NCBI GenBank assembly: GCA_905178155.1
Contig: CAJINV010000015.1
Location: 1,943,730-2,007,729, forward strand
Direction of reading: 5' to 3'
Length of the DNA: 64,000 nucleotides
From: Amoebophrya sp. A120
Taxonomy: Eukaryota; Protista; Dinoflagellata
Under the pieces are notes generated by a model. It worked only from the letters and a program-made list of their open reading frames with translations. It had not been told where the DNA came from and searched no databases. A program made the translations under genes and the position numbers. Below, piece after piece: positions 17,913 to 50,168 of the stretch (position 1 is the stretch's first letter; each line of letters starts with the position of its first letter).

Positions 17913-18099
17913 TCTTTCTCTTGTTGTAGTGATGAGAGGACGCCACGCTCAGGAGGCTCACTAAGTTCGTCTGCCCCAAGGACAGGCTCACTTTACATCG
18001 GGTTGGTTCGGCGGTTGTAGACAGAGACACTCACACATGCACGAAAGCATGGATCCGCTTCTGGCCGCAGGAAATTGAAATGGCAAATGCCCACTCAGT

Positions 18100-20150
18100 C
18101 ATGTCATCTCGGGGGGGGGAACACGCTGCTACGGAGACGACATCTATCGCCTCGTGTTCGAGCGATGTCGCAAGATTAAATAAGAACCTTCGGAGGTGGA
18201 CGCGCCAACGTGGCAGGTAGGTTGCTCAGTTGCATTCAGAACACCCACGCCGATGCGGGTGGCCAGCCAGCATGCCTCCATCTTGAGCGAAACGCCATGC
18301 CCTTTCGCCACCGCCCGAAAACTAGCGGGGCTGAGTTTCCTTCGGTGAAATACTGAGGCGCGACGGAGCAACATGAACAAACAAGGGCCGCGGGCATGTA
18401 AATACGACGCGCCAACCCACCACGCACGCCAGCGCCAGGCGGGTGTGAAAGAATGAAAGAAAAATAGACCGCGGAGCAGGGGACACACACAACACCCGCG
18501 CCGACCAAGCAGACCCGCGGCGCGCGCCCGACCCCCCCCCCGCGCGCCCCCACACACCACGCACGACGGCAACCTGCCGGCACTTGCCGGAACGAACACC
18601 AAACCGAGGGGCGGGACCCAAAGAAGGGCGGGGGCCGGCGGGCGCTTGCCCAAGCGCCGCCGCCAAGGGAAGGCAGGGCCCCACAACCCCGGCAAGCACG
18701 ACCCCGGAGCCAACTCCCCGCGCGCCGGCTGGCTGCGGTTGCTTCTCCGAGGCGGGGCGAGGAGGATGCGGAGGGAACTCGAAGAGGAAGGCGCGCGCGG
18801 GGGTTGGGGCGGCAGGTTTTGTCTCTGGGATAAAAGTCCGCCCCCATAACTGCGACGCGAAATCGCGACACCAGTCCGGGAATTCACGCGCAAGCTCCTG
18901 CTGGAGCGCGCTCCTCACCTCGTCCGACAACCTCGGTCGTGTCTGCGCCGCATCGCATTCGGCCCCCGTCGCCTCCGCGTGGCGCAGTATCTCGCGAGGC
19001 ACCTGGCCAATACAGGCCGCCGCGTGTTGTTTGTCGAGCTTGCCACCAAGGGCCGCGCTGGTTGGGTCAAGGAGCGCGCGTAGGGTGGTCGTGGGGGCCT
19101 CTTTCTTTGGGGGCGATGTCGATTGTAGTCTGTAACTCGCCCCGAAACGAATGAACCCCCCCGGGCAAGGAAGCGTGAAGCGACGTCGGCGCTTTGCTGT
19201 CATTTACTAACTACGCGCGCCGCCCGCGGGGCGCAGGCAGGGCGCCCCCCCCGAGGGGCCCCGAGGCGGGGCTTGGGGGGGATGGCGGGGCGCGCTGCCT
19301 TCTTTTCCTGTTCCTGCAGGGTGCTCCGGCATGCGCGCGGTCCAATCGATTGGCCCGGCCCCGCGGCCTTTCCCCCCCTTTCGGTTTCTTGGTGGCCCTG
19401 GCCGGCCACGCGAGGCAGGCGCTGGCATTCCGCAAGGGCGAGGCCCACAGAGAGAACGAAGCGGCGCCTGTGCGGCCGGCGCTGCCCGATGCGTGCGACG
19501 CTGTCTTGTGTGTCGCTTCAGCCGGCAGCGGGCGGGCGCTCTAAAAAAAAGGCCTTCTCCTATGGCCTAAAGTAGCCAGTCCGCGCGGTCCTCTCATCCA
19601 TAGCCCGCTGCCGCTTTGTCCGGGGCACCTCAAAAGCGGGGGCGGCGGGCCGCGGGGGCGAAATGATTGCAACAAACGGGGCGACAGAAAGGGGGGGGCT
19701 GCAAAGCCGCGGCGCCAGCTTCGGCGCGCTTTTATTTAGTGCGTGGCGCGGCGCACGGGCCGCGGCCGGCACCCACTTGCTTGCCGGCAGGCCATACTTG
19801 TCGCGCCATCACTGCGGCAATTCTTTTTCGCTCCTGCTTCCTGAAACCAGCGCGCCCAATTACTTGCGTCCGCATGGCGAGAAAGCGCGCCCGATTTCAG
19901 GGTCTGGACCGCACCGCCGCGGCGTCCTGGAACCGCGAGGGAGGGCGTTGGCGCTTTGGCCCAAGCCCGGAGCTTCGCGCCAAGCGCCGCAATATGCTGC
20001 CGAACGAATTGACTAAACAGGCCAAGGAGTTGGCTGCTGTCCATCGCAGGAAGCGCAGCGGCGCCCGGCGCGGCCCCCTGCAAGTTCCGGGCAGAAACCT
20101 GCGCGCCACGGCTGTAAGCTTCAAGGCCGTGCGTCGATATCATTCGCCAT
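18100..20150. other. GC-rich intergenic island, possible degenerate repeat or TE
   Basis: Abrupt rise in GC with many overlapping ORFs and no domains; no termini found. Confidence 0.3.
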
Positions 20151-23600: not shown

Positions 23601-26600
23601 GTGACTCGACGTCGACAGCTGTTGGCTCCTCGTCCGCAGGAGCAGGCGCCGCTGGTTCATCTTCGCCAGTACCTTCTGCAGGCTCCACTGGTGTTGGTTG
23701 CTCAGTAGCATGTGGGTCTTCCTGCTGCTGCGCAGCGGACACTGCATCTGCTACAACTTCTGGTGCAGCTTCTGCATCTGCTGGCGAGGTGGATTCTTCG
23801 ACCCCAGTCACCTCGACCTCCTGTGTTTCTGGCAGTTCTTTCGGCTCCTCCTGGTTTACTGCGACTTGCTCCTCCGTCACGGTCAATCCCGGCAGCTCGA
23901 AGTCGTCCTCGAAGGTTTCGTATGCACTGCAAAAGTATCGTGCTCGTACTTCTAATTGCATATTTGTAGCAATTATGCATTACAAATCTAGGTAGTTAAG
24001 GTAAATCCGCATTACAAATTGAATCTGCATTGCTGAGCTCCTTTGTATTTATCGAAGAAAAAAACACCATCACAATCACAAAATTCAAATTTTCAAAATT
24101 TTGCAGGAGCTGAACAAAAAATTATTTTGATTCTCAGGTAAGAAAATACTTTTCAATTCTCGAATGCGAATGTATTTATTTTTGTGTTAGCTATTTGGTT
24201 ATGTCAAAAATGGCGGTTTGAATAAGCTAGCTAAGAGAGAGTTCTGAAGACAAACGATCAGCTTCCAGCAGACGAAGCTTGGTAGATGGGGTTGTCGCCC
24301 TCTGGCCCCACCTCGTAATCGCAGCGGAGTCCATTGGAAGTCTAGGAGCTGGTCGGATTGAGCAATTGAGCCAAGTGTCGGTCCGTATTTCGTGGCTCCC
24401 GCTGGCAATCTGTGATGCATATTAGGGGAGAATATAGCTCAGAATAGGCCAAATCAAGGCTAGAATGCTCGAAGTAAGGCTATATTATAGGCATTTTAAG
24501 CTGAATCAGACGTCTACAGGACCCAAAAGCCAGCATCCTGGCCCAATATTCCCCTCTGAAACCCTCCCAAAGCTTGCATCTAGCCAAGGCCTCCCCAGCC
24601 TGGCACTGTGGCCAAAGAGAAGTAGAACAAGGCCAGCCCCTGCACCCCCTGAGACCAACCCGACCCAGAAGCCTGCCCCCACCTGCAGAGCCGCGAAGAT
24701 GGGAACTCGCCCCCACCAGATCGAGCAGTGGTCCATTACACAGGCGACCCAGCTGCTGGAGGAGGAATTTTCGGTCATCTATACGCCGGAATTCCAAGCG
24801 GACATGGCGATTACGCCCAAAATTCAACCTGATGAAGCTGTCGACTCCCAGGAGATGGGCGCAAACAACGCGGCTCTGGATGGGCCGATGGCCGTGCTGC
24901 TCCAGATCAAGGGCTCCTGGAGCCCCTTGAAGCCGTGGCTCCAGAGCTTGAAATGCCAAATAATCAAGCACCGCAAATCCTACGCGAACACCATTCTCAT
25001 CGGCATCACGCGGAAACGGCAGGCCAGCGTCCTAGTTGTCCCAGTCACTAGGCACTACGACTGGGAGCTAATTGACCTGATGCACAACGAGTGGTGGTGC
25101 CGAAAAGAGGACCTGCCGAACAGGCTACGCGAGCACTGGCAGGGCTTTGCCCTCAACAAAACCGCTGCTCTCGGCCACTTCAATTGCGCATCCCGGATCC
25201 AGGCCGTCGAGCAGCGCATGCGCCAGCAGTTCGCGCAGGGCACAGTGGCCGCAGGCGGCGCGTATGCCCTGAATTCTGTTGGCTTCAAAGTGGTGGATGG
25301 GATTCTACGGTATGGCGGGCACACGATACGGCGCCAGGAAAGGACCGCGAAATTCAAACTAAACGGGCGCGGTGAAGTGGCGGGCATCAGGGTGAGCACC
25401 GCGAGGCATCATGCTATTTCACATTTAAGTTTTTTCGCGGTCGGCCGCGGCAGCTCTGGGCACTGCAGCCTCCCGCATTACACACTCATGAGACCGCGCC
25501 GCAACAGGCCAGAGCATTGCCACCCTAAACCTATTGAGAGAAAGATTGGAATCTTCATAAAATATTATACCAGGAAAAACGGATCGGGCTTCACCCCGGA
25601 CCAAGTCGACGCCTTCCTGCTGCATGTGCGCGCAAACCGCGGGCCGGCTCACAGCTACGCGGGCACTTTCTTCTTCCCCATTCGGGCCCTATCGCTTCAC
25701 GGCTACGCCCCAGAACTTATCCGATGAAACCTGACGTCCGTGGCTCGCCTGGAATACGTTTCTGCTGATGGCAGTAAGCCTGCAGAAGCTCTCTGTCCAA
25801 ACTATGTAGCTTTGTCATGCCGAACGTGCAAAGTCTGTCATGCAGAGCGACAACCTGGACAGCGTGTAAAGCAGATCTCAGCAATGGTAGAACTTCAGAA
25901 GCAGCGGCTTCTCAACAGAAACGCATGACAGATTAGCCACGGACGCAGATTTCAATTCCATATAGCCCACGGATGAAACGTAAGCAGTTTCTGACTGCCT
26001 TGTCGAAGAGCTGCTTTTCGCACCATTGTGTTTTCGTTTTCAAACAAAGCCTAAGGATATTTCTAAGAGGCAGAATGAATAAGCAGAATCATCTGAAACA
26101 AATCCACACACAGGCTACGGTGGTCCGGGACCCTAACACTATATCCGGAGAACCTGAACTACGTGGAAAATGGTGAAGCGTCCTGGGCGGATGAGTTTTA
26201 TTTATCGAAGGAGCAGATTTGTCATGCTGCTCAGCTGCAGGAGATGCTGAGCAAAGTGGTCAACGTCAACAGCGAAAGTTCTGACGACGCTATGGAGCTA
26301 TAAGTGATTTCCGGTGGCTCCTGCAGACCCACACAACATAAAAATAGCAGCGATGATTTTGACTGCTAGCAACGAGCCCCGAGGACCTTGCCGAGCCTCA
26401 ATCTGGACCAGTACAACTCTACTTCGATCACAAATTTTTCAAGTGGATGCCGAGGTGCGGAGAAGCTCACCAACAAGAAAGAAACAGAAGCAGAAACACT
26501 ATATTTTGAGATAGGCAAAGCGACTCACTTATTCCAAGCGGGGTAGTGCAGCTGAGGTCATTTATTGAGGGGTCCTGAAGTAGTTCATTTATTTCATGAT

Positions 26601-29600
26601 AAAAACCTTCGATAATTTCAAATCTGTGATGCGAAAACTATGTACCCGATTCCCTACATTGCCATATGTCCACCCGGGCCAGTTCCTTCGCAACATAAAT
26701 TGCGCATGACAGATTGCGAGAAGTCCACTCAAAAATGAGTTTCATTCTCAGAAAATAAATCGCGTGGTATTAACGTGCAGCAGTATTCGCCTGTAGTGAT
26801 GCTACGCAGCTTCAAACTACAGGAGAAAGAAAAGTGTGTTTGAAATTTGTCATGCGTTTTGCTTCTGTTTCTTCTTCGTTTCTTTCGAGGCGAGAAGTGA
26901 AGTTATTGCATGACAAGTTGTGTAGTTGTTCCATCAGTTCGTCTAGATCGGAAAACAAATCCGGATTACAGCGGAGTCTGGCGAAACCCTACCACAAAGA
27001 TTGCGGATGGAGCAACACCACACCCGGAGACGGATTGATATCAACACGAGATATAAAAATAAATCATTTATTGCATCACAAATCGAATTTTGTTGGTAGT
27101 GGCGCGAGCAGATAGTTCTATTTCTTCCTGCTTTCTAAATCTAAATGTTGAAAGCCGAACCACTTATAAAAGAAGAAAGGTATAACCACCTATGGAAATA
27201 CAAAGCGCATGCGATTTCTATGCAAAAAGAATTTCTAGAATAAATCTTATCTCGCTTCCACTTGAAAGCACTTTTTTGCTTCTCTACGCGCCGACTCGTC
27301 GAGAATATCAGCTTCAAAAATGCCAGCGATGCCAGCGGCGGATACAGTTCCGCAAGTTCAAAATTTGTCATGCATTTTTCCACTATCGCACATGGCTTGA
27401 GAAGAGCGATATGCGAGAGTGGATTTTTAGGTATGAAATGGCTACGAGGACACTGATTTGTCATGCAAACCACCGCTGGCGTGAAAGCTGGTCATTTTTG
27501 CATCTCATAGTACCGGGCTCAGTTGTCGAAAAGATCGAAGTCATCATCGGAGTTCTGCTCGTCGTCGGCCTGGAGGTCAGCAGCCAACCAAGTTCAGGAC
27601 CTCTCCGGCGCGGTCTCGCATGCTGCGCTCCTGGACCAGCAGCTCTTCGCAGTCCGGGCACTGCAACTTGTGGAGCCGCAGGGTGCCGGGACAGAAGGCT
27701 TGCTCGATAATCTCAATGAGATTTTGGCGGCCGCCGATAGTAGTCGTCATCTGCGGCTTCGGTCCGGGACCGAAGTCAGTACCTTTCGGCCAGACACACC
27801 GCAGCATCGCACCAACCTGTCCGGTACGACGGAGGCTGCGGCGGACCAGGTGGACGTCATCGTTACAAGCCGTGCAGATGTCCGCCCATTGCGTGGTGTT
27901 CATGACCCGGCCGAGCTCACGGCGCCCAGCCCGGTCCACTCCTTCCATTCCCGCACCGCCTTCGCCCGCTTCACGGGGAATGAGCAGCGTGTTGTTGCGG
28001 CGACGGCGCACAATCGGCTCGTCGTTGATCCCGTCGATGAGGATGGTGTTGTTCTCCAACAACTCCTTCACTTCCGCCACAGATTCTTCGATCGGACGAG
28101 ATTCGTCCGCGAGTCCCTGCAAAATCTTCCGCAAAATGCTCGCGGGGGGGGAGCTGATGATCGACTTCCCGGTGTAAATCCGAATGACATCCTTCAGGAT
28201 GGGGGACGGCAGGTGGTTGATGCACTCCATCACTCCCTGCTTGAACTCGATGATGTTCGCCTGCTGGAAATGGAACCGCAGCTGCCCGTGATGAAACGAA
28301 ATGGTGTAGTCAGAATATGCATTGCAAATTTGTCATGCGCACGGAGCGGTAGATTTGTGCTTCAACTTTATATTTCGGAATTGCAGCGATCGGGCAAGAA
28401 GCACAAATCTACACTTCCGCATGACAAATTTGCAATGCATATCTCCATGAAGGAGAGATGGGCCGTCAATCCCCACCCCGGCTGCATCTGGTTGTACGCC
28501 AGTGCGATCATCAGCACGTCTCCCGGAACTCTGGTCATCGACACTCCGAACCACTTCCCGTCGATAATCTGCAAGACCAACCACATGATCATTCCCAAAG
28601 TCCCGTCCTCCTCGTCGATAGCACAGACCGGGCGGTGGTCGGCAGCGCGGTGCCGCAAGCGCAGAGCATTGTCAACAGATTATGCAGATGAGCCTCCTGC
28701 TCCCTGAAATCACTACCATCTGTCATGCGCAAAATGTGATGCAAGATGCCGCGTCTGCTCCTCGCGCATTACAAAATCTGTGATGGCGAGCAGGAGGCTC
28801 ATCTGGATAAACGCTTGCCAACCTCTTCCAAGATCGGGATGTCGGCCGTCTGTTCGACGCGACTGGCCTGGAGGCGCACCGCGGTCTCCAAACCCGGCTT
28901 CACGTAGTTGATGGCGCTGGCGGCGATGTCGTCACTCAGAGAATTTATCCCAAAGAAAAATGTCTAAAGTGAATGTTTTCCATGATGCGAGTTCTTTTCC
29001 AGTGCCACATTATGTGTTTGTCATGCATGAGAGCAACACTCATTTTAGTTTTTTTCAGAGGATAGTCTCCAGCTTGATTCGATTCGCGATCTCCACCATC
29101 GGCTCCGGAAGCGGATGGGACATCCGCAGGTCCTCCAGGACTTTGAACTGCTGCTGCAGGGTCGGAGCGTCCTTAGACTCCTGCAAAACTTCTTCACGGA
29201 AAGACGCAGCGGTCGGCGGATCAGCGGTGTTTGCCAAAATCGGGCGGATCTGGGAAACCGGGGCAGGGGCGTGGCGGGAACTCGAGCCCCACAGGGACGG
29301 AGTCTTCCGGTACAGTTGCATGCACTTTTCGGCCCAGCGCAAGCGGCCGAAAGACAACTTGAACCGGCCTTGGAGGGCGCGGAAAATCTTCTGTGCGACA
29401 CTGGCATAACGCCAGTGCCGCTCGCCTTCAAATTCCCCCGTTGCACCGCTGATCACAATCAATTTCAACACCTCCTCCCCAAGCTCCGAATCGGTGTTCA
29501 GGAGGTTCTGAATGTAGGTGGCGAAGACATTCAGCTTCCGGCAAAACACGCCATTTCCGGCCGTCGTGTCCAGGACGTCGTGCTTAATATCGTTGGCCAT

Positions 29601-32600
29601 GATGTGGGCGTCAGAGATGCGGGGACGGAACACAACCGAAAACCACAGCCCGAAATTGGGGTCGAAGCACGTGTACAAGTAAAATCGCATGGTGAAGATC
29701 ATGATGCACATGGCGGAGTGCATTTCCTGCAGGTTGTGGATGTTCTTGCAAGCCTGCCGCATGGCAGCAAGCAAGAACCCCGGCATGTTCTCCTCCACGC
29801 TGATCAGAAAGTCGTGGCATTGACCGTCGAAGTTGGCCCAGGGAAACAGCGGCGTGTACTTCGCCTTGATTTCCGCTCGTCCCCGATCTGTCGACAAAGC
29901 ACCGGCGGTGACGGAAAGGCGCATGGAGTGAAACGAGTGGTGCACTTTGATGGAGTCGACGTAGTGCCGGGCTCGGTCTTCGTCGCAATTCTCGATGGAG
30001 TTCAAAAGGTCCAGCGTCCGCTGCTTGTCCGTGCGACGAGTGTTGTTTCCGCGACCGGCAGCTCCTTCGGGAGCAGTGTATGAAAGTGAAAGCCTCTTTG
30101 TAGATACGAAATTTGGAAATTTTGCATGACAAGTTCGAAATTCTACAACTAGAAGCTTCAAACTACCAAACCCGTTCTACAAAGAGTTTTTCACTTTCGT
30201 ACTTCATCATCTGCGTCGTCATCCGGATCACCTAAATTCCCAGCGGGAGCGTTTTGCTGCTGCGCGGGCGGATTGGCGGCCGGAGGAACAATCGGAGCAA
30301 CATCTGGATCATCCTGCACGTCCTCCATCTCGACGTCCATGGGGGCCAACAAGTTGCCGACCGGCTGCTGCTGCACTCCATCCGGATTATCAACAAGATT
30401 ACCTTCGTAGTCCAGCAGCGTGTCATTGCGATCGACTTCAGCCGCCACGAGATCCTCTCCATTCTTATGCAAGGGACAAACAACTGCAGCCTGCGCATAT
30501 AGGAAACGCAGCTGTGAGTTCATTTCCGCATGACATCTTTATTCTTCACATTTCCACGTGGTCAGATTGCTAGCTGTTTGTCATGCATATCTTCCACCGA
30601 ACACATCACTGCTGAGGCCCATGACACTGCCCTCCTCGGTCAAAACCAGTGGCGCAGGAAACAGGTCGAGATAATCCAGCGCGGTGCCATCCTCAAAAGT
30701 CGAGGGCTGGCCACGCTCCGAGCCGTCGACTCTGGCCCGAAACCCGTTCTCGAAGTCCAACATCTCGCGCAAGATCGCAATCACCACTTCGCTGTTTCTG
30801 AGCAGCCACTGTGCCACCGCCCATTCCGCAAACCAGCGGGCTCCCACCATACTGGTCAGCGACGCATCTGTATTGCGAGATTTGGGCGGATTTGAAGACG
30901 ACGATCAAGAGCTTTCGACTTTGAAAAACAATCTTTTCATTATTTGTTTTGTCAATCACAATAGACATTTTTTTTCGCTAACTCTAATATTTTTTGGACC
31001 CCCCCCGAAAACAAAAAATGTTTTCATTTTTGGTGTGATGTTGCACCAAAAAAAGAGTGAGTCCCCACCTATAGGCGAGCATCACACTTCACAAAATAAC
31101 CACTTTTGAAAAACTTGAAAAAAAAGCGACTTCGGAGTCCGCGCCTAAAACTGAACTTTTCCGGTTGTGGTGGTGTTTTTGTTTTTGCTTCTTTCGTTTG
31201 CACTTAGGTGGGGATTCAAAAAATATCACGTTTACAAAAAGCGCAAAAAGTGCCATTTTAGGTGGGGATAAAAAACACCATCACAACTCGCTTTTTTGTA
31301 TACAGGTGGGGATAAAAAACGCCATCACGTTTGATTTTCCACAAAAAAATGAAAAAAAGCCATGTTTTTTTTTGCACTTTTTGTCCCTTTTCGAACTCAC
31401 TTTTTGAGCACTTTTTCTCTTTCTGATCTGTGCGACCAAGAATCAAAGCGCTCACTTTTGAAAAAATCGAAAGCCGAAGGTTCCGGCTTTCGACTTGGGG
31501 CAAGTTTGGCTACCGGGCCGCTGGCCACGAGCTTCCTCCATCTTGTTTCAGGGCGCTGTGATGGCCATTTCAAAATAAAAAGCCGACTTGTATTGAGCCC
31601 AAAACCTGAAATCAACATAAACCACTTGCATGCACTACCGAACGCTAAGAGAAACAAAATCGAAGTACTTTCTTGTAGCGCCTTTTTCGTCGTCTTCCCG
31701 GTCTGCCGCTCGACCTTCACGATGCACAAGTTCTCCTCGTCGCACTTCTGCAGCAGGCGCTGCCTCGCAGCCTCGTAGGCGCCGCGGAGGCTGTTACGTG
31801 CGTATTGGCCGCGGAGGAAATCTCGCAAACAGAATCGGACCCGCGCGATGGCAAGGTACACGCGGCTGCATATATTTGAAAGTCGATGATGGATGCCGAG
31901 GCGCGTGACACAGTTGATCACGTAGCCGAGTCCTTGTCCAGAACGTACTTGTGATTCTTCTTGATCACTATCTATGATCAAACAGTGGCGCCAGCCACTG
32001 TAAAACGGTCCGACCAGTTTTCGCACCAAGGCCGGCCCCCCGAGCCAGTGGACAAGCCGGAACAAGTCGACGGCCTTGCCCTGCGCGGCGGAGTGCACGG
32101 GGTTTTTCCCTCCCGGAAGCCGTTGGCTCGGGCGCTGCAAGATCAGCGGGAAGAAGTAGGTGACAAACTTCCGGACGGGGTTGATCATGAAGCTCAAGTA
32201 AGCCTGAGTTTGTAATGCGTAAATCGTATAAGGCGAAGCTCTGTAATGCACAGATCCAAGGAAACAACGACTGATGCAATTTGTCATGCGAGAATCAACC
32301 AAAAGAAATCTAAACTCTATACCGCAAAGGAGGCTTTTTTCTCCTGCCCTTTTGTACTCTCATCGGTCTGAATGTTGATCGTTTTCTGCCACACTTGGTC
32401 ACTCAGTTGGGTGTACTCGCCGGGGTACTCGAAGTGGACAACGCCAAGCAGGTTGTTCATGAAGATGATCAAGTCGAGCGTCCCCCGCAGCAGATTGGTC
32501 TGGGTTGATTTTTTTGGGTCTTGAGGAGAATCTGTATTGCGGGAAAGAAGTGGAAATCATGCAGCTCGAGGCGTGGCTATCATATCTATTTTGGAAAAGC

Positions 32601-35600
32601 GGAAGTAGCGCGACCTAATGCGACAAAAGAAGGTGGATACGATTTACCAGCTGCAGGTGTGCGGACACCTCGGACTCGCAGTGCGCCTTCTCCAAAGCTG
32701 TGGCGATCAGCTGCAGCCTGTCGGAGTCGTTGAGGTCCTGCGGCTTATAGCGGACAGTGGCCAGCCACGCCTTCACCTGGTCGTTGTACCCGCGCCCCTT
32801 CATCCACAACAGGAACAAGGCCTGAAAGAATTTAAATTTGTATTGCGAAAATACGTTTTTCTTCTCATCAGTTTCGAGTTTGTGATGCGCAAATGATGTT
32901 CGACCGCAACTACCCAATTTGTCATGCATGTAGGGGCGCCGTCTTTCAGCGTGCTCTAAATTTGTCATGCGAAAATGCCCTCGGGCAAATGCCTCGAAAG
33001 CACTTCGCCATGTTGAAGATGCAGCTCTTGCAGCTTGCCCCACGAAAAAGTAGAGGAAAAGGTTGAAAAGAAAAACAAGCACCATCTCCAGTCCCATATT
33101 GGTCTTGCAGGTGCCGTTCTCCATGTCCAGGTCCTCCGCCGTGCCGTACATCTCGGACTGCTCGAGCTCCAGGCGCCACTGGGACCACTTCGGAGCCAAG
33201 GCTCCACGCTGGCGCTTCCAGTTGCCAACGCACGTGTCGCTGAGCATGCGGCACAGCATCAGCGTGCCGTTCTCGTGCAGTTTCTTGCTCTGTATATCCT
33301 ATGGCAAACTGGCCCCACGAGAGTCGTTTGATATGCAGCCATGCACTCCGTGCATGACAAATGAAGGTTGTGCATGGCACAGCAAACAACTTTCGAGGGG
33401 CGTTTGACATCGGATACACCTGCACCATCTTCAAACTATGTCGCTATCGAGAAAGCGCGGAGCGCAAACCCGCACAAAAACTATATTTGAATCTGAGTCG
33501 CTACGTAGATTTAGAAGCTACAAAACCTAGAAGCTCTAGTTTGCAATCAAGTGGAATTCCAGTCCTGTTTTCGCACGAAGTGCAAAAACGAAGGCCCTGT
33601 TAGAAGATGGCTCAAAATGCATGCATCGGAAAGAACTTTTCGCAGTCGCAATCAAGATCGGGTGGAGAACGAAAGACCTGCGTTTTGATTTCCGTGGAGC
33701 CTTGTCGTCCGAACTCGCTGAGAAGCAGCAGAACCGGGGAGAAAATTGAAAAAAGAATTGTTGTTGGATGGAGCGCATTGGTGGAAGAACGAGGCACCGC
33801 AGGGCCGAGCGATGAGCAGAAATTTGGGATCTCCTGCGGTCGTGGCTGTAGGCGACGAGAACGTTGATCGACGGCAAAGCCATTGGTGATCCGGGCGGTG
33901 ATCACGTTATTTTGATTTCGCGGAACCATAGAGCTTCGGTGGAAGGAGCTTTTCATTTCGGAAGGAGGAGGTTGAGGAACACGAAAGAAGAAGAAGCGGT
34001 AGCGGGCACGTAGCCTGTCGGCAAACATGAGAAGGGCGCAGCTTTATTGGGTTCCATCCGTCCGCTTAACAGTTAAAAAATAAAGTTTTTGCGAAGCTCG
34101 AAAAGCTTCACACTTTATCTCAGCAATGTATTCAAAAGGAGCAAGCTCCATACGCGGCGAAAATGTTCATTTTCTCCTCAATCGAGGAGTAGAAATCGTC
34201 GATGACATCGACTCAAATAAATGTAGTTCTTTCCCTGATAGTTCGTTTGATTCGACACCGTGGTCCGCAGATGGAAATGAAAACGATGCCCCCACCTTAG
34301 CGAAAGGCACAATTGCAAGATGCCTCATCCTCACACGCGTGACACTTTACAAAATGCATGACTAATTCCTGTCGCTGTGAAATCGTAACGAGATATCATC
34401 TTGTCACGCGTGACAGATTCCGATCTTGCGCTTTAGCCTTTCACTAAAGTGGGGTAGAATTTTTCAAATCCATAAGGACTGGGAGATCAGTGTCGCCGAG
34501 ACCGAACGCGGTGGAGGTGAAGATATCAGTTGATGAATATTCGGGAACTACTACTGCCGCAGCCGAAGTTGTTTTAGCCGGATATTCGAAATTATTGCTG
34601 GTGATGGTGCTGCTAAATCGGACGTTGTTTTTATTCCTTTCTTTCATTTGTTGTTTGAAGTTTGTCATGCAGGACCGCGTGACGTATGTAGACAGGTTTT
34701 GATATCAGTGTCCCGCTGCACTGGTCCGGATATCGGCACCGGTTTCGAGTGTAGTTGCTGATGGGAGGATGTAGGCACCTCCGATGAGCTTTTATTTCTA
34801 CGAATAATCGGTTTGCTCTTGTCGGCCCGCGACGAAATAGAACTGTGAAAAACTGCAACGCCGCAGTTTTGACGATGTTGATTCGGCCTGCACCAGCAGC
34901 ACCTACTGCGTTTTGTCCTTCTTCACCTCGTCCTTTTTCGAGGTATTCTGTTCCTCCTTGACCTCACCCTTCGTGGATTTGCTGCTGCTAGCCGGAGGCC
35001 CCGTCTTGGGCTTCGGCGAATAGTGCTTGTCGTTTTTCTTCTCCGACGGGGGCGGGTCCTTCTGCGACGCAGCAGTCTTGTCGTCGTTCTTTTTCTTCCC
35101 CGAGCTGCCCGGAGTACTGGCCAACTTCGTCTTCATGGGGGTGGACTTATCCTGTTTCGGCGCGGGCAGCTTCGGCGGCAACATCTTCGTCTTCTTTTCG
35201 GATCCCGGAGTCGCGACAGGACTCTTGCCGCGCGGAGTGCGCGCCTTCGACTCCGGGGTTTTCGGAGCGGCGTTTATGCAATTGAAAACGAGCCTCCGCT
35301 GCAGAAATTTCCAGGAGGCTGAACTTGTCATGCGTTTTTCGTTTTAGAGAAATCAACTTCTCCATAAAATGAACAACCTTGTCGTTCAGAAACCTGGAAA
35401 CAAATGCTGCAGCGAGGCCGTTTTCAAGTAGATACACTTCTGGGAGGACTGGGCACCACGGCCGGAAGCCTGCGAGGCAGTCGCCTTCTTCGTCGCTTTT
35501 TCACGCTTCGCACGCAGGGATTTGGCTTTGTCCGACAAAGCGCTACCACGCGACGGGCGCTCATCGGTACCCGGGACCTTCACCGTCGGCTTCGGAGCCT

Positions 35601-38428
35601 CCTTCTTATCGTCCTTCTTGTCGGCCGATTTTTTCTTGGTGCGGGTAGCAGCACCTTTCCCAGCCGGCTTCTTATCATCCTTCCCCTTGCCACGGCCGCG
35701 CTTTTTCGAAGCACCATGAGAAGAATCCGGCGACAACGGGGTAGCAGGCAGTCCCGACTTCGACTCCTGATCATCCAGTTCCCCATCATCGATCATACTG
35801 TCGAGGTTGGGGCTGTGGCGGAAGTAGTTGTCCATGGAATCTTCGGCGTGGGAATCAGAGTCGCCGATAGAGTCGGCGTCTTCCTCTTCCTCGTCCACGC
35901 TTTCCAACACGTTCCGCTTGTTCTTCGAAGTCTCCTTCCCCGCGAGCAGCATACTCGGTTTCCCAGACTTCGGCTTCCCCGACGAGCGCATCTTGCGGTA
36001 GTCGCGCAGCGAGTAGTTGTGGTTCGGGGCGAAGATGTCTCTCGAAGACCCGGGGAGACCCGCACGCTGCTCGATGTAACGGGGGTGCGGGGTCAATTGG
36101 CGGACGGGCTTGTTCTTTTTCCGCTTGGGCGGGGTGGATGGCGCGGAAGAAGAGGACTGCTTGCGGCGGCGCTTGATGGTCACATTCTTGGAGCGGCCAC
36201 GCTTGCGATCCGCACTGGAGCTGTCGCGGAAGTTCAACATCATGGACTTCGGCTTGTTGGCCAGCGCCAAAATCGAGCCCTGTTTTAGTTTTTGGATTGG
36301 TCAGTCATGATATAACTTTTCAGATGTCTGTATTGCGCATGAATGAATAGGCTGGCGAAGCTTTGTGTTGTGTGTAAATTTGCACCGACTTATCTGACAA
36401 ACAAAAGTACCTTCGGCTTAGCTTTCTCCTTTTTCATCTTCTTGTTCTTGGCATTTTTCTTCCCACCGCGGCGACCTTTTCCGCAAGAACTGGAATCAGA
36501 GGTATCGGTGCTGGCATTGCGGTTTTTTTCGCCTCCGAAAGCCGAATCGTGGTCACTGTCGCTGCTACCGGATTCCGACGGTTCGTGGTCGCCGCGCATC
36601 AAGCGGCGCAACTCTTTGGCCGCTTTGCGGAACTTTTTCGGGCGGTTCTGCTTCCACCAGCGCAGTTCACCCACGCAGGACTTCTCCGTAGCGGCCGATT
36701 CGCCTCCGGTCGGCGGCTGTTTTTTGTTATGAGGAGGTGGTTCGGGATCAGCGCCAAAGCTGAAGCTCTGGAGCACAACACAAGTGATGAATTTGTGATG
36801 CAAAAAACTACACATATGCATGACAGATTTGAAAAAAACAAGATGAAGTACGTGAATGTCGGTAATTCCCATGGTCCGAAAGAGGACCCACGCCTGCTCG
36901 GCCTCTTTCAGGACGCGTTGCACGTCCTGGGCCCCGCACTCAAAAACCAGCGCCGTCCATTTTTGCAGGAATTTGATGGGTATCGACTTCCACCCCTCTG
37001 TGAAGATATATTTTTGGTTTCATTTTCGCATGACAATCTCTTATCAAGATATGAGTTCATGTCGGACGGGAAAAAATGAAGAAAATTATAAACCGACCCT
37101 ACAACAACAGCACAAGCGCATCAGACAACAGCAAAGTAGTACCTTTGAAATTGGTTCCACTGAACACCTGGCCGCCCAACTTTTCTTCGGGCTTCTTCTG
37201 GGACTCGTCATAGGCATCCTGCAAGTGCTTGATCAAGTCCAGCATGTCGGCCGGTTTCAAGTGCGACAAGATGATCTTCAAGCACACAGCCAGGCGGGCC
37301 GCCTCTTTTTTCTTCTCGGGGGCGGTCAAAGGACCGTAGTTCCCCGTGGTTTTGGCGTTGAGAATGATCTCCTGGCGTCCAGACATCTTGCTTGTCTTCG
37401 AGAGCGGAAAGTCGAGCCCTATGAAGATGAAAACTCCAGTCATTCCCAACCAGTTTGTCATGCATAAGTCTACGTCTGCAAAATATCTGTCATGCTAAAA
37501 ATGCATGACAAACTTGGGAAAACTGGAATTTTCTAATGCATATGTCGAGGAATCCGACGAAGTTACCGTTGCGGTGGAGATGATAAAGGTGGAAGTTCAA
37601 AGCGATTACGGTGAATCGAGAAGACTGATGCTACGACCGAGCAAAAGTACGAAAGTGGAAAGCTGATGTCTGCGACAGCGCTGAAATTAGATAAGCCCTG
37701 GAGGTGGTTTGGAAATGAAGCTTTTTGGTTTGGGTCGCAACGCAGTCGGCGCATGACAAATATGAGGAACCGTGGAACGCGGTAGAAGTGGAACGCATTT
37801 GAGATCTGCGTGACAAATTTGGTGACCGCGAATATTCTAGATCTCCAAGCCATCTGCTGGCTTGGCTGTGAGAGCTTGGCTCTGATCGCTGGGGCCTAGA
37901 GCCCGGAGCGCATGCATCGTTTGGCGATCTGGCTGCTCGGGCCTTGGGATTTAGAGTCTAGATCTATGGGCCGGAGCCGGAGCAGTGGATACCCTACTTA
38001 GACGTTTTGCGAGCTCGAGCTGTGGATGTCCGAAGTCGACGTTTTGACTTACGAGGTGGGGCCAGAGGGCGACAACCCCATCTACCACTGTTCGTCTGCT
38101 GGAAGCTGAGCGATTGTCTTCAGAACTCTCTCTTCTTAACTAGCTAGCTTACCGCCAATAGCCAATATCATAAATCATCTGCTGCAAAACTCAACATTCA
38201 AAACCAGATACAACAGGTTCGGGAGTGCCGCGAAAGTCCAGCGAAATTTTAATTTTGATGGTCAAAAATTTTGAAAATTTGAGTTTTGTGATTGTGATGG
38301 TGTTTTTTTCTTCGATAGTATTGCAATTTATTCTAGTACGATACTTTATTTGCAGTTCATATTTCGCTTTCAATTTCCTCCGCAATAACCTCCTGATTGC
38401 TCGGAGAAAGCTGATCGCCACCCTCCAT
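20653..38428 (-). CDS. Hypothetical acidic/low-complexity host protein; first exon (38428-38362) separated by a 14.4-kb intron
   Basis: Removing 23921-38361 plus one TTTCG gives MEGGDQLSPSNQEVIAEEIESE-TFEDDFELPG in frame; continues through the ORFs at 22831, 22296, 21717 and 20653. Confidence 0.7.
24465..25727 (+). CDS. Transposon cargo ORF; C-terminus resembles MepB-like / PD-(D/E)XK-fold proteins
   Basis: 420-aa ORF antisense to the host genes; RKIGIFIKYYTRKNG..DQVDAFLLHVR..GTFFFPIRALSLHG recalls the MepB pattern KKIGQFV..KR..D.FDFL..V..GQFIFPK..L..KG (from memory). Confidence 0.45.
   Translation: MLEVRLYYRHFKLNQTSTGPKSQHPGPIFPSETLPKLASSQGLPSLALWPKRSRTRPAPAPPETNPTQKPAPTCRAAKMGTRPHQIEQWSITQATQLLEEEFSVIYTPEFQADMAITPKIQPDEAVDSQEMGANNAALDGPMAVLLQIKGSWSPLKPWLQSLKCQIIKHRKSYANTILIGITRKRQASVLVVPVTRHYDWELIDLMHNEWWCRKEDLPNRLREHWQGFALNKTAALGHFNCASRIQAVEQRMRQQFAQGTVAAGGAYALNSVGFKVVDGILRYGGHTIRRQERTAKFKLNGRGEVAGIRVSTARHHAISHLSFFAVGRGSSGHCSLPHYTLMRPRRNRPEHCHPKPIERKIGIFIKYYTRKNGSGFTPDQVDAFLLHVRANRGPAHSYAGTFFFPIRALSLHGYAPELIR
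27577..33900 (-). CDS. Multi-exon divergent DDE transposase candidate (hAT / hATm-like)
   Basis: Ordered motifs: SSDDKAP..LHPILI (~33700), LSDTCVGNWKRQRGA (~33236), VGARWFAEW (~30835), LKLIVISGATGEFEGERHWR..RFKLSFGRL (~29420); C-terminal CTAC..CPDC. Start and exon borders approximate. Confidence 0.55.
28316..28441. mobile_element. IR intron inside the transposase gene
   Basis: Perfect 24-25-bp IR TATGCATTGCAAATTTGTCATGCG; no matching 5-bp DR. Confidence 0.8.
28681..28809. mobile_element. IR intron inside the transposase gene
   Basis: TAT(G/C)CAGATGAGCCTCCTGCTC IR; no matching DR. Confidence 0.8.
33290..33419 (-). other. GT-AG intron enclosing a degenerate TAT..ATA IR (33295-33416)
   Basis: CAG|GTGTATCCGATGTCAAAC...GTTTGCCATAGGATATACAG|AGC; splicing gives MVQ-SKKLHENGTLMLCRMLSDT in frame. 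Confidence 0.7.
34903..37386 (-). CDS. Second multi-exon transposon gene, Lys/Ser-rich basic protein with NLS-like tracts
   Basis: Exons MSGRQEIILNAK.., ..WWKQNRPKKFRK.., ..KRRRKQ..PPKRKK.., ending KKDKTQ*; separated by IR-type introns such as 35275-35434. Confidence 0.55.
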
Positions 38429-41802: not shown

Positions 41803-43014
41803 TCAACTAATACCTTGCAGCGATTCCACTTTGCCCTTGCAACCGTCTAGCTTCTTCCCCGCTTCTGCGCTGGCTTTTCGCTTTTCTATCAACTGTCTCT
41901 TCTGCTCGGTCAGCTCTATCCAGAGGAAAAAAATATCCATCTTCCCAATACATCTTTTGCATGATTTGATATTAGTAGAAGATAGGATACTAAAAGCGCA
42001 GGCTGTAGACGTTCATGTTGTATTTTGCGTGACAAATAATTCATTGGAAGATGAGAACAGGTGTAGTTCTTTCCCTGGCGATAAACTCCTGCTCTTTGTT
42101 CGTCTTTTCCTCTTTCAGCTCGCCAATTTTGGCTTTCGCTGTTTCCTTTTTCTGGCAAAATTCCTCGTGCTCCTTGTCCAACTTTTCCAGTTCGGCGGTC
42201 AGCTTTTGCAGTTTTTCCTTTTCTATCCTCTCCAAAAGCATCGCACTGATTTGTTCTGTTGTGCTAGTAGTTTTTGCAATCTCAATCATGCATGGCAGGT
42301 ATGATCTGCTCCTAAAACCGTTCTTCAGCATGACAAGCTCCATTCCTTCTCCTGTGAATAAAAGTTGTAATGCAATAACGGCCTAGTAGTACGATGCTTT
42401 TACCATGCGTATCCTCTTCCACGATCACATTTTATGCAAGAAAAAAACTGTGTAAGTGTAACTTTCTTGGAGGAACAGCATCACAGGTTTGCTCTGCATG
42501 ACAGAGAAAACCTGTAATGCGTAGCTAGTACGTGAAAACACGCACGAAAAGAGCCCCTCATGCACGTCCAGCATGACAAGTGTAACAGTTTTGCATTTTC
42601 TGCAACACAAAGTTACACTTACACAGTTTTTTTGTTGGATACATTTTGCAGCTGCTTCAAAGAATTCGCGGAATACCGACCTCCGCCGAAGTTTGTCATG
42701 CCGCGCGAAATGACAGAGCTGGAGTTCATCCTGGCATTTGCAGTTATGCAAAGAAAAAAGTGTTACAGTTACACATTGTGTAGCACGACCGGCAACACAG
42801 ACAACCTTTGTCATGCAGGAAATGCTTTGGAGACTCGTTTCCTTCGTGTTTTCCCTTATGATCTTTGCATTGCAAGTTTCCTCTGTCATGCAAAGCAAGT
42901 TTGTGATGCTGAAATTACAACAAATGCGTAACTGTAACACTTTTTTCGTGGGATAGCATTAGTGCTCCCTTTATTATTGCCGTCACTCACACTGGCCCAG
43001 GGCCCAATCCCCAT
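41803..43014 (-). CDS. Hypothetical coiled-coil protein with about 4 introns
   Basis: Spliced reading SDGNNKGSTNANARMNSSS..KQLQNVIVEEDT..IEIAKTT..KEQE-LTEQKRQLIEKRK..GIS*; start uncertain. Confidence 0.55.
41917..42083. mobile_element. Introner
   Basis: TATCCAGAGGAAAAAAA...TTTCCCTGGCGATA; DR AGCTC/AACTC; removal restores the frame. Confidence 0.75.
42433..42641. mobile_element. Introner, family GTAAC
   Basis: Perfect 25-bp inner IR AAAAAAACTGTGTAAGTGTAACTTT, TAT..ATA ends, DR CATTT. Confidence 0.9.
42745..42955. mobile_element. Introner, family GTAAC (inverted relative to 42433)
   Basis: TATGCAAAGAAAAAAGTGTTACAGTTAC IR; DR GCAGT/GCATT. Confidence 0.85.
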
Positions 43015-46303: not shown

Positions 46304-48591
46304 GACCTGAAAAAAATGAGAGAATGAGCAGAAGCAGCATGTGCATGTGGATCGAGACTGTAGATCCGTGGGGAAACAAAACGTACTTCATCCACGACCA
46401 GAGTAAGTGAGCCAACACTTGGAACAGACACACGGGGTTCTTGCGGCAGTGACGTGCAGAGTCCTACTGCATCCTCGGCGCAAACGCTTCGATTATATCC
46501 TTAATATTCAACGCAGTATTTGTATTTCTTTTTCTTCTTTCTACGAGAGGTTTCAAGATCTGTTTTGCTTTTGCAGTTGTTACGGTAGAGCTTTCACTTT
46601 CACCTGGAGAGCCCTCGTCTTGCTCTTGTCTTTCTTCTATCTCGCGAGCATGCTGCATGTGCATCGACAAAGTTGCGGTGTCGGTCTACACGATCTTCTT
46701 GTTTTTGAAGCCCGGCTCCATCATGTTGAGCAGTCGCATTTACAAGACTGTAAAGCTTGTGCACGCCAATGGCAGCTGTTTTCGTAATAAATCGTGCTGG
46801 TTCCGCAGACGCTCCATGAGCGGTTCGTCTATCGGCCGCCAGAAAGACCAATTCCAGCTTGAATGTGCTAGTGCTGGTGTGTCTGTTATAGGTTTATCTA
46901 ATTCCTGTAGCTACAATTTCTCCTAGTATTTACGTATGCGTACTCACTAGCGAAAGGAGGCAAGTGCAGTTACGTTTACGCCAACGCTGAAGCAACATCC
47001 GTAATTGATGGTTAATAACTCGTCACCGCTTTTTATTTTTAGCCCCCTTCTGCTATAAATTATCAAAGCGAAGCAGCCGATCTGCACCTCTGAGGACCTT
47101 CAACTTCTCATCTTGGAGTCGAACCATGGACGTCATCCACGTCTTGCGTGCGTCTCCTCGGTGAGCCTGCAACTCCTGAGAAATCAAAAATGAAAAAACT
47201 ACGTGAAATCATCTGTTGCTGGCGAAAGCAAGTACTTACCATTTACAGAAAGTTGAAACGCTAATATCATTCATAAAATTACGAAAAGGTTTTGCAGCCT
47301 TTCAAAGTTAAAGTTTCAGTCTGAGTTTTTTATTGAGAAATAATTTGCGCGAAGATATTTTTAGTGATATCCTCTTCCATATATTAAATTTCTGTGTGGA
47401 CTGCCACTGCTGCACAAATTCAAAAGGTATTGACAAAGCTGCTCAGCCGACCTGCCTGCCTGTAGGTGCAGACATATAGGAGCAACTAGATGAGGTAAGT
47501 ATGAACAGATTATGATGAGAGCATAAATCTTCAGAAAGTCAGAAACTTGCGTCACTTCGTTCGCTTGTTCGCTGCCCATCACCAGTGCAAAGGTAAGCGA
47601 ACGATAGCTGACGACTGATAGAGATGATATCTTACGGGATTAGAGCAAACTTCAAAGAAGTTGTAGACACCTGGAGAACTATGGATATCATTAGGTAGAT
47701 CAAATCCCGCGCTCGTTGATGATCATCGCCATTGGCAAGGGACAGCCGTGCAAGTGTTTCAGTTCAACATAGTGCAAAGGCCCAAAATTTTGGGTCGTGT
47801 TTCATGATTAGGCTGTGAGTAGGACTGGCCGTCCTCGCCCCCCCCAGGCTGCTGCGTACGGCAGTAAGTAATCAGAGCGCAATAAGATCAGTGCAAGCGA
47901 GCAGATAGGTAAGCCCGCGTGCCTGCTGTCAAGCAGCAAGTTTGCGTATGGCGGATGGAGAAAGGTGAGCGCAAACTCTGCCAGGCGCGCGGGGCTTCGC
48001 TCCGTGAAAATCGAAAATGTGCGCCGGTTTGCCGGTAGCCGCCGGAGGAGCGGGAAGCCGACCGGGCGTGGGCCTTCTGCCTGTGAGGGGAGTGCGTACG
48101 CAGCCCATCCCCAGTGAGGTCTGGGTCTGCGGCATCTACACCCCGGTAGGAGGTTCGCCGGCGCTTCACCTTCGGGGCTTTGCAAAATGTGCGCCGGTTT
48201 GCCGGCGTGCGTCTATGGTTCAACATTATAACGCTTGATATTTTGAGAATGAACACAAGGAGCTCACGGGCACAACGCTCGCGGCCAAAAGTCTAGGACA
48301 GGTCGTCGAGCACTCATGTAAAGATATACAAGCAAGAAGTGAACCCCCACAGCGGGAGCGTCGTGTCTGTGTGTTTCTGAGGATGTGTTCGACCTAATGA
48401 TGATCTTTATCAACGGGCTGGCTTGGTTTGGCGTGATAATGGATATCATTAGGTAGATCAAATCCCGCGCTCGTTGATGATCATCGCCATTGGCAAGGGA
48501 CAGCCGTGCAAGTGTTTCAGTTCAACATAGTGCAAAGGCCCAAAATTTTTTTTTTTCAAGCTGTGTGAGCCCGCAAGAGTCCCAGCAAAGA

Positions 48592-49833: not shown

Positions 49834-50168
49834 AGACAATGATGATCATTTCGCGAACAAATTGCAATCTGACCACACTCGATGGAAATAGTTGGCACCT
49901 CCGTGAAGGGCTTTCAGGTTCGAAATTTTCAGACAGTTCGATGAGTATGCACGCGCTCCGCGCGAACAATGATCCCCCGCGCCCTGTGTGCCGCGGCTTG
50001 ACCATGCCACGCACATTCCTTGTTCAGTATAAATTCCCACACTTGAGACAGGACTCACCACGACCGCGCGTCGCGTTAGCTGCAGAATTCAAGCTCAGAG
50101 CGAGTTTTCGCGTCAGTCGCTCCGCACAGTTTACACGTATTGCATTGATTTCATCACAGCAGTTCAGG

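Follow-up and report, generated by a model that had tools for sequence, protein, structure and literature searches.

A 14.3-kb DNA transposon as a candidate master element for non-canonical introns in Amoebophrya sp. A120

Introners made by DNA transposons have been surveyed by Gozashti et al. in 2022 (PMC9860276) and 2025 (PMC12130899), and about 72% of introner families are unclassified in the later of these surveys. MITE-type introners that arose from DNA transposons are known in Micromonas and Aureococcus, as cited in Farhat et al. 2021 (PMC7789003). Few known intron invasions are as extreme as that of the dinoflagellate Amoebophrya sp. A120, where repeated elements account for tens of thousands of introns and about two-thirds of all introns are non-canonical. 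The inverted repeats of these introners begin with TAT, followed by seven variable bases and at least three A, a pattern found in 29,850 repeated introns; the direct repeats are 3-5 nt long and the transcript is hairpin-forming (Farhat et al. 2021, PMC7789003). The same paper reported that transposases are absent in A120 and that this absence "rules out" transposase-mediated spread. The reported absence left the mobilising mechanism open.

The present study concerns a window of 64,000 nucleotides of the A120 genome (contig CAJINV010000015.1, positions 1,943,730 to 2,007,729), which contains a 14.3-kb element. We interpret it as a full-length DNA transposon of the cut-and-paste type, probably autonomous or recently so, that belongs to a family specific to Amoebophrya. 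Its minus-strand protein of ~1,200 amino acids is in all likelihood a DDE transposase, though a highly divergent one, that may mobilise MITEs in trans. The ends and 5-bp footprint of this element are the same as those of ~65 small elements, and it carries a probable transposase; it may therefore be the enzyme source reported missing in the genome paper. As a master element for introners it is a well-supported candidate, not a proven one.

The large element and its relatives in the genome

The element occupies positions 24050-38317 of the window (14,268 bp; positions 1,967,779-1,982,046 of the contig) and has the ends TAT...ATA. Its left TIR (24050-24123, plus strand, beginning TATCGAAGAAAAAAACACCATCACAATCAC) and right TIR (38244-38317, minus strand) pair over 74 nt at 85% identity; the outermost 34 nt are identical, and 52 of the outermost 53 match. 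A subterminal inverted repeat of 86 nt (94%) follows inside the TIRs, with its left arm at 24233-24318 on the plus strand and its right arm at 38049-38134 on the minus strand. The TSD, GTATT, stands at 24045-24049 and 38318-38322. A sequence-only reading of the window had described a 14.27-kb element with 53-bp TIRs and a 5-bp TSD, and these measurements confirm it.

The element has inserted into a small introner that belongs to a host gene. The left part of this introner, a member of the TATGCAnTGCAAAAG family, lies at 23921-24049 and the right part at 38323-38361, and the introner has its own TSD, TTTCG, at 23916-23920 and 38362-38366. Paralogues of the host introner are present at 12960-13118, 43584-43733 and 62574-62714, and the uninterrupted target can be read from them as ...TTTGTAATGCAATTTAT...; because these copies hold the target intact, they fix both the boundaries of the large element and the 5-bp duplication. 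Deletion of 23921-38366 leaves a 396-codon minus-strand frame open across the junction. No small TSD-bearing elements were found within the 14.3-kb element.

A search of the genome for further long TAT..ATA elements with 5-bp TSDs, the check that the sequence-only reading had proposed, returned C35, C13, C14 and C10. The large copies now number five in four lineages: the 14.3-kb element has a second copy, 98.7% identical, and three diverged lineages are represented by full-length elements of 12.8-13.7 kb, in all of which the 5-bp TSD is perfect. All have TAT..ATA ends, the 5-bp TSD is perfect wherever both ends are visible (GTATT, GAATC, AATGA and TTCTA), and three genes are kept in the same order across all four lineages. 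Internal-deletion derivatives, also looked for on the suggestion of that reading, were found as well: two copies of 524 bp and one of 1.2 kb, 96-98% identical by BLAST. The 524-bp derivatives consist of both ends of the large element (97-98% identity by BLAST, and 99% for the other copy when the genome was searched), their deletion junction falls in the left subterminal arm, and their TSDs are AAGTA and GGACA. Copies are thus dispersed at unrelated sites, with flanks that vary among them and with internal-deletion derivatives included, as is characteristic of Class II elements. TIRs together with a TSD of fixed length, which define Class II TIR transposons, are present in the window, C13, C14 and C10 elements, in the three deletion derivatives and in 31 of 33 of the MITEs described below.

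Small elements with matching ends, one of them an annotated intron

A family of 206-bp MITEs, small non-coding copies of which there are ~65 in the genome, has a 31-bp TIR in common with the 14.3-kb element; the overlap is confined to this TIR, and internal sequence is not in common. All 33 copies examined have TAT..ATA ends and are a median of 95% identical to the consensus; in 31 of them the 5-bp TSD is perfect. A TSD length of 5 bp was seen in every copy examined, be it a MITE, a deletion derivative or a large element. The C15-type TIR core, that of the window element's lineage, has 66+67 matches in the genome against 0 for the control. Thus, one MITE family shares terminal sequence with the element (23-31 nt of TIR) far beyond chance. 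The C13-type TIR gave 176+170 matches (roughly 170 copies) and the C10-type TIR 33+41 (roughly 37 copies), again against 0 for the control in both cases, and every lineage tested has short derivatives and MITEs of its own. The direct TIR link is limited to these specific families (~65, roughly 170 and roughly 37 copies) and does not take in all introners.

Several members lie in the window. A 206-bp MITE with the TSD TTGGA at 9076-9281 has a TIR that matches the full-length element of the C13 lineage; the pair 7202-7259 / 9009-9066 was considered as an empty-site pair for this MITE and rejected, since it stops short of the MITE. A 209-bp MITE or introner at 42433-42641 (TSD CATTT) begins TATGCAAGAAAAAAAC and has a TIR (TATGCAAGAAAAAAACTGTGTAAGTGTAAC) resembling that of the C10-lineage element, and a 125-bp TAT..ATA element at 43811-43935 begins TATCCGGGAAAAAACACC and is flanked by ACTTC/ACTCC, a TSD matching at four of five positions. 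The introner ends cited in the sequence-only reading at 42433 and 43811 are therefore present where it placed them. That reading had also counted about 22 small elements with such ends and TSD. A strict scan of the window, limited to TAT..ATA elements whose 5-bp TSD is perfect and whose TIRs match at 13 or more of 16 positions, returned nine small elements and none in each of 20 shuffles. Further copies have one TSD mismatch, which makes the figure of about 22 plausible.

The MITEs sit in genes; an EngB-type GTPase and an exostosin domain are among the products of the flanking sequence. In one published gene model of A120, a 206-bp MITE is annotated as an intron: deletion of this MITE and one TSD copy yields exactly the annotated EngB GTPase protein (GSA120T00023674001), the single cognate MITE compared with an annotated protein (n = 1). 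With removal seen in this one annotated protein, the cognate 206-bp family has the features that define A120 introners, namely a repeat with inverted and direct repeats that is removed as a non-canonical intron. At the MITE intron locus that was checked, the sequence allows no GT-AG in any register. In all of the clearest MITE loci the reading frame is restored by deleting the element and 5 bp. A naive longest-frame test over 33 MITE loci, in which 14 need 5 bp removed, 13 need 0 (mod 3) and 6 need 1, proved too noisy in this genome, and the clear cases alone were used. Folding of the MITE RNA is predicted to pair its termini over more than 30 bp (z = -8.65). Three raw RNA runs with the species label gave zero reads over a chosen 5.9-kb MITE locus, i.e., no coverage, and none of the presumed-RNA contigs bridges the tested MITE.

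The transposase-like gene and its predicted fold

A multi-exon gene on the minus strand (27583-33298) is colinear with Amoebophrya proteins of 1,154-1,279 amino acids (P0001, P0004, P0010 and P0012). Its conserved exon pieces (32642-33298, 32320-32556, 31664-32209, 30593-30871, 29061-30065, 28808-28963, 28419-28676 and 27583-28332) are all open and include three candidate catalytic residues. The intron at 28316-28441 has 25-nt perfect inverted ends and is without a TSD. The first candidate Asp (NIQTDEST, 32362-32364, minus strand) falls at the end of predicted beta-1 (model strand E167-179) and is D in every row that covers it. The second (IIDSDQEE, 31964-31966, minus strand) lies just past predicted beta-4 within an invariant DQ (17 sequences), with GIHHRLSN ~25 residues downstream. 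The candidate Glu (FEGERHW, 29421-29423, minus strand) follows ~400-416 residues past the second Asp, beyond an all-helical region and where model confidence is low; this E and the W three residues on are invariant in eight sequences. The long multi-exon protein with DDE-like motifs proposed from the sequence alone is correct in substance, and is placed on the minus strand from about 33298 down to 27583. The protein family was found in Amoebophrya A25 (homologues CAD7976041.1 and CAD7943878.1), AT5.2 and A120 and in short ENA/Logan fragments, and nowhere else.

Sequence comparison gave no relatives of known function. Pfam searches of 20 open frames or exon pieces and seven homologues returned nothing relevant, PDB searches with four sequence profiles (A1, A2, A7 and A8) gave no match, and a family sequence profile run against the PDB did not recover Hermes. 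A protein homologue search with the profile of a 335-aa exon gave no hit in the length range covered. This lack of homology to known transposases would be expected if the big gene were a passenger, or a lineage-specific nuclear protein, in a large non-autonomous or dead transposon, with another enzyme moving both the element and the MITEs. The presumed-RNA contigs for the species also favor such an explanation, as they contain almost none of the gene's words and hence no sign of its expression. However, four lineages that are 30-60% apart in protein sequence all retain the gene at one position and in one orientation, and it is under purifying selection (dN/dS between lineages 0.15-0.56; 0.15-0.24 in the core exon). 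Moreover, each lineage has its own TIR variant and matching MITEs, a pattern that TIR recognition by the encoded protein would predict, and the invariant D, D and E are predicted to lie on an RNase H-like model. On balance we regard a passenger gene as unlikely, and favor a transposase encoded by the element itself.

Structure prediction used the A25 homologue P0001 (~39% identity in the core exon), and the window exons were searched singly. Both AlphaFold models, in which confidence is low to moderate (pLDDT 52 and 59, with the Glu region below 50), show the order beta1-beta2-beta3-alpha1-beta4-alpha2-beta5 of an RNase H-like core; this topology and the positions of the two Asp residues fit a DDE enzyme, and the D, D and E are invariant. 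In Foldseek, Hermes, a hAT transposase, filled ranks one to six with the first model and one to ten with the second, the lowest E being 3.2e-3. In VIA-align it was again the top match, with Z 7.9-9.0 over ~270 residues, a margin of ~1-2 Z units over the next rows at Z ~7. Hermes thus came first in six of six structure searches, with Z values of 8-9 that lie in the range that the tool calls common for models without a true relative. Feature neighbors in the ESM Atlas that carry a family assignment belong to hAT-related families. The models thus predict an RNase H-like DDE core for the protein family, nearest in structure to Hermes, in favor of the fold on which the sequence-only reading had made its proposal depend, and the match of the predicted fold to hAT is a modest one.

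A DDE enzyme of another superfamily, either a retroviral-type (rve, Ginger-like) integrase or a Transib- or P-like transposase, would be in better accord with the 5-bp TSD, in the case of rve or Transib, than hAT, in which 8 bp is usual. Integrase catalytic cores superpose on model residues 170-300 at 2.4-2.6 A and with Z of about 7.2-7.6, not far under Hermes; they do so through integrase core residues 57-139, a pairing that at the level of single residues is inferred from the range ends only. TIR-flanked A120 introners with integrase-like homology also appear in Gozashti et al. 2025 (PMC12130899). However, the protein has no conserved acidic residue ~35 residues past the second Asp and instead has its invariant Glu ~416 residues on, beyond the helical region, and Pfam gives no rve match. 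RAG1/Transib and the P-element transposase are absent among the best 50 of 48,161 representative chains in either search, in which Hermes ranks first. An enzyme of the rve, Transib or P type therefore seems improbable, and a hAT-like DDE core is the likelier reading of the model.

The element has two other conserved genes. ORF1 (24699-26273, plus strand) has a Met at 24699, a frame open to 25724 and a further conserved piece at 26100-26273; it is 40-51% identical in amino acid sequence to proteins at the same position in the C13, C14 and C10 elements, and had no match in Pfam, the PDB or the Atlas. ORF3 (35413-37389, minus strand; conserved pieces 37144-37389, 36456-36998 and 35413-36282) encodes a basic, Ser/Lys-rich protein with no match in Pfam; alternatively, it could extend the transposase gene at its N-terminal side. 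The length of 12.8-14.3 kb, the TIRs, the short TSD and the presence of several genes would also suit a Polinton/Maverick-like or virus-derived self-synthesizing element. Such an element is highly improbable here, as none of the open frames has a Pfam match to a polymerase, packaging ATPase, protease, capsid or rve domain, and as MITEs and deletion derivatives in such abundance typify cut-and-paste transposons.

Proposed mobilization model and comparison with known systems

Collectively, matching ends and TSDs, a cognate MITE that is an intron and a predicted DDE core support this element family as a candidate for the enzyme that creates introns, as first proposed from the sequence of the window, albeit not for all introners. 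In the model we favor, the candidate DDE enzyme would have an RNase H-like core with a long helical insertion extending from the second Asp to the Glu, as in hAT enzymes. It would bind termini composed of TAT-YGAAR and an A-run, together with lineage-specific subterminal bases, excise the element and integrate it by means of a 5-bp staggered cut. The same enzyme may move the internal-deletion derivatives and the ~206-bp MITEs of the same TIR in trans. The transcript of a MITE inserted in an exon would then fold into a long terminal hairpin, and the MITE would be spliced out with one TSD copy as a non-canonical intron, possibly with a role for the hairpin in splicing. A broader proposal, which we put forward tentatively, is that the 13-14-kb three-gene elements form a new lineage of eukaryotic DDE transposons at the superfamily level (hAT-like fold, 5-bp TSD and TAT termini). 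This lineage would drive the majority of the non-canonical hairpin introns, which number roughly 30,000 and make up ~17% of the A120 genome, and a sister lineage in A25 would explain the different introner ends of that strain, which start with TTA.

With an enzyme candidate that has matching ends, a matching footprint and cognate intron-forming MITEs, the question of mobilization becomes testable. The present analysis also adds a candidate transposase family invisible to sequence-based methods, which may explain why most introner families elsewhere are unclassified.

Among known transposons, the element is most readily compared with hAT (Hermes, PDB 2bw3, 4d1q and 8edg), which it resembles in the predicted RNase H-like core and in a candidate catalytic Glu that lies far past the second Asp, beyond an all-helical region. 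The two are also alike in being TIR-bounded elements with MITE derivatives. At the level of motifs, the candidate enzyme has His-x-L-S-N after beta-5, where hAT enzymes have CxxH...L-N, and the G-E-x-x-W context of its Glu is comparable to the S-E-R-x-F of hAT. In contrast, the termini are TAT... rather than YARNG, and the TSD is 5 bp rather than the 8 bp usual for hAT, some named subgroups of which are said to produce 5-6 bp. The protein, about twice the length, is encoded in a 13-14-kb element with two further conserved genes. Neither a BED finger, the hAT dimerization domain nor sequence-level similarity to hAT was detected in it (Pfam, PF05699 and the family profile), and PF05699 gave nothing over the cut-off in the whole genome.

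The 206-bp family and the small elements of the window fit the A120 introners of Farhat et al. 2021 (PMC7789003), with the same pattern of termini. The 14.3-kb element, although inserted inside one such intron element, is coding and is not itself a typical one. With MITE-type introners, the small elements have in common that they are short, non-autonomous and bounded by TIRs and TSDs, that they become introns upon insertion in exons, and that they exist in many near-identical genic copies. They differ in that the introns are non-canonical, and in that a candidate autonomous partner with matching TIRs has been identified.

Structure and genomic context of the large element

The large element, a 14,268-bp TAT...ATA transposon candidate referred to here as the master, has exact limits at window positions 24050-38317. 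Its terminal inverted repeats (TIRs), 74 nt long and 85% matched, are identical over their initial 34 nt and match at 52 of the initial 53; about 180 nt inward of each end, a subterminal pair of inverted repeats follows (86 nt, 94%). GTATT is present on both sides as a 5-bp target-site duplication (TSD), which bears out the claim of the sequence-only reading that a TIR-bounded element with a 5-bp TSD resides here. The surrounding DNA belongs to the TATGCAnTGCAAAAG...CTTTTGCA...ATA family of small repeats, intact window paralogues of which run uninterrupted across the master's insertion point and can therefore be used as empty sites. This outer small element (23921-24049 plus 38323-38361) has its own 5-bp duplication, TTTCG, and once 23921-38366 is deleted in silico, the minus strand carries an open frame of 396 codons. 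Thus, the master is nested within an introner, an intron-forming repeat element, of a host gene.

In the A120 assembly, a protein encoded on C5 is 100% identical to one deposited for Amoebophrya sp. A120. A search of the whole assembly with the master recovered a C35 copy with 98.7% identity across 9.8 kb, which differs in its flank and in which a run of N makes a break, and a full-length but diverged C13 element (13,736 bp; TIR of 56 nt at 98%; TSD GAATC). Two additional elements were reached through the protein, C14:2219640-2232430 (12,791 bp; TSD AATGA) and C10:102183-115917 (13,735 bp; TSD TTCTA), so that other long TAT...ATA elements with 5-bp TSDs, for which a genome check had been proposed, are found on C13, C14, and C10. 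All four lineages share three conserved genes in unchanged order and orientation, and their ends begin with a common TAT-Y-G-A-A-R and A-run, followed by lineage-specific sequence. Identity between lineages is 40-51% for ORF1 (24699-25724 and a further segment, 26100-26273); no match to anything was found for it, nor was one found for ORF3 (37389 down to 35413), which is basic and Ser/Lys-rich.

The master, the C35 copy (flank C35:56069), and a 1.2-kb derivative (C12:1731318-1732519; TSD GAGTG) each lie inside an introner of the TGCAAAAG family, at differing positions. Introner DNA may be a preferred target, which would account for this nesting; alternatively, long insertions could survive only within pre-existing introns. 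At L076:2889-2919 (C5) and C1:1384046-1384314, a contig whose run was tentatively taken as RNA links the flank of the truncated C1 copy to master-type sequence just inside the TIR, which places this copy in the run's transcripts or in contaminating DNA. Elsewhere, the window contains exact direct repeats within 47681-54799 (300 nt at 47964/54324 and 111 nt at 47681/48439), a tandem array of 14-bp units at 3565-3838 with at least 13 overlapping copies of a 106-nt register, and a GC peak of 0.66 at 18001-20000, against about 0.50 in the remaining window.

Deletion derivatives and small copies in genes

Two 524-bp derivatives on C3 join master positions 1-261 to 14005-14268 and carry the TSDs AAGTA and GGACA; one is 97-98% identical to the master by BLAST and the other 99% by genome search, and their deletion junction falls within the subterminal inverted repeat. 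With at most two mismatches allowed, the 23-nt core of the master-type TIR matched the genome 66 times in the forward and 67 times in the reverse orientation, as against 0 for a control pattern, and the matches are mostly paired, with about 170 bp between partners. Each of the 33 pairs sampled delimits an element 198-222 bp long that begins with TAT and closes with ATA; the 5-bp TSD is perfect in 31 and has a single mismatch in two. These MITEs, or small non-coding copies, have a median identity of 95% to their own consensus and share with the master the 31-bp TIR only. The TIR cores of the lineages named after the full-length C13 and C10 elements gave 176 + 170 and 33 + 41 genome-wide matches, respectively (control 0 for each), and both match sets include derivatives of 0.5-1.25 kb with the exact TIR. 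Both TIR sharing with introners and internal-deletion derivatives, which the sequence-only reading had proposed as checks, were found, the former in the master-type matches and the latter in the 524-bp and 1.2-kb forms. Within the window are a C13-type MITE at 9076-9281 (TSD TTGGA) and a C10-like MITE at 42433-42641 (TSD CATTT), the end of which is the introner end earlier cited at 42433.

In paralogous neighbour genes at C5:6366680-6370360, a MITE of the 206-bp family occupies the equal position in both, with TSDs ACGAC and ACCAC, which suggests that insertion came first and gene duplication later. TAT..ATA families of 310-320 bp with perfect 5-bp TSDs occur in the window at 8687-9008, 9902-10222, 9518-9830, and 16700-17008, and their TIRs are quite different (TATCAAAAGGAAAAAT; TATGGAAGCGTCAGG).

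At MITE loci with unambiguous flanking frames, all frames require deletion of the element and exactly 5 bp; the same test, a crude one, is noisy across all 33 loci. The proteins encoded by MITE flanks include an EngB-type GTPase and one with an exostosin domain. The A120 protein published for the GTPase gene, GSA120T00023674001 (413 aa), contains ...NNYDLAPLIRAATSDSS..., the exact product of removing this gene's MITE (206 bp) together with a single copy of the TSD. By inspection of the sequence, GT-AG is possible in none of six registers for this MITE, and its transcript is predicted to form a terminal stem exceeding 30 bp (z = -8.65) that brings the exon ends together, as in the model proposed by Farhat et al. 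for A120 introners. Three RNA runs gave 0 reads at this locus, and contigs tentatively taken as RNA did not cross the MITE.

The minus-strand protein and its predicted fold

Coding sequence conserved between the master and the C13 copy lies mostly on the minus strand. No Pfam domain was found in any exon or homologue of the minus-strand gene, and profile searches of PDB sequences with its family returned no match. A profile of the best-conserved exon retrieved only 15 proteins from 1.84 billion representatives; the named ones are all from Amoebophrya, strains A25 and AT5.2, and the remainder are short ENA and Logan fragments. Four of the 15 are full-length (1,154-1,279 aa) and colinear with the window's minus-strand exon pieces (33298 to 27583), one of them, in A25, comprising two members of a single 90%-identity cluster on separate contigs. 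Between lineages, dN/dS is 0.15-0.24 for the core exon and 0.44-0.56 for the large exon, and the few differences between two near-identical copies are mostly non-synonymous, a pattern expected for a transposase.

The earlier mention of "DDE-like motifs" is borne out in substance: in the numbering of P0001, the A25 homologue, D177, DQ 277-278, and E693 with W696 are invariant in every family sequence that covers them, and the window codons of candidate D177, D277, and E693 are 32362-32364, 31964-31966, and 29421-29423. Close to its C terminus (window 27583-28332, minus strand; ...CTACNDD...LHKLQCPDCEE), the family conserves a C-x2-C ... C-x2-C/H pattern that may form a zinc-binding DNA-binding module. 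An intron-like gap within the gene, at 28316-28441, has perfect 25-nt inverted ends (TATGCATTGCAAATTTGTCATGCG...) and lacks a TSD (CAGAA vs TCTCC).

Two models of P0001, a natural homologue, were built from two alignments and agree on the order beta1-beta2-beta3-alpha1-beta4-alpha2-beta5, in which alpha1 is long and beta5 is followed by helices, with pLDDT of 55-82 over the core in the second. Hermes, a hAT transposase of known structure, supplied the six best Foldseek matches of the first model and the ten best of the second (best E 3.2e-3). It also ranked first with VIA-align, both over Foldseek's list (Z 8.9 and 9.0; about 270 residues aligned) and over 48,161 representative chains (Z 8.0 and 7.9). 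VIA-align itself cautions that models lacking a true relative often reach a best Z of 7-8, and the rows below Hermes are at about 7. Retroviral integrase cores (residues 57-139) superpose on model residues 170-300 at 2.4-2.6 A and, judging by the ends of these ranges, D177 and D277 would occupy the places of integrase D64 and D116; the candidate E693 is situated in a low-confidence stretch of the model. ESM Atlas feature neighbours with a family are hAT-related, at lead-level scores of 0.76-0.79. The modelled fold indicates that the minus-strand protein is likely an RNase H-like DDE transposase, for which hAT-like would be the best, if unproven, placement. We leave the family out of hAT because the PF05699 domain was not found in it and the master family has a 5-bp TSD, unlike the 8-bp TSD that defines hAT.

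Relation to described introners

In A120, Farhat et al. 2021 (PMC7789003) count 29,850 repeated introns, which they group into 1,954 families amounting to 17% of the genome; the introner inverted repeats begin with TAT, seven variable bases, and at least three A, and the direct repeats are 3-5 nt long. The termini of the master family and of the MITEs conform to this description of introner ends. The same study reported putative transposases in A25 only and stated that this "rules out" transposase-mediated mobilisation (PMC7789003), a conclusion that the candidate master in A120 contradicts. Some A120 introners have since been attributed to "diverse TIR DNA transposons," with about 72% of introner families unclassified (Gozashti et al. 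2025, PMC12130899); the text of that paper makes no mention of hAT. As a candidate explanation, the proposal that this element family is the source of the enzyme that creates the introns is supported by these results. Systems in which the MITEs of a master transposon turn into introns are already known. What is new, relative to the texts of Farhat 2021 (PMC7789003) and Gozashti 2025 (PMC12130899), is the candidate family of enzymes, the 5-bp footprint of that family, and its connection with the non-canonical introns of A120.
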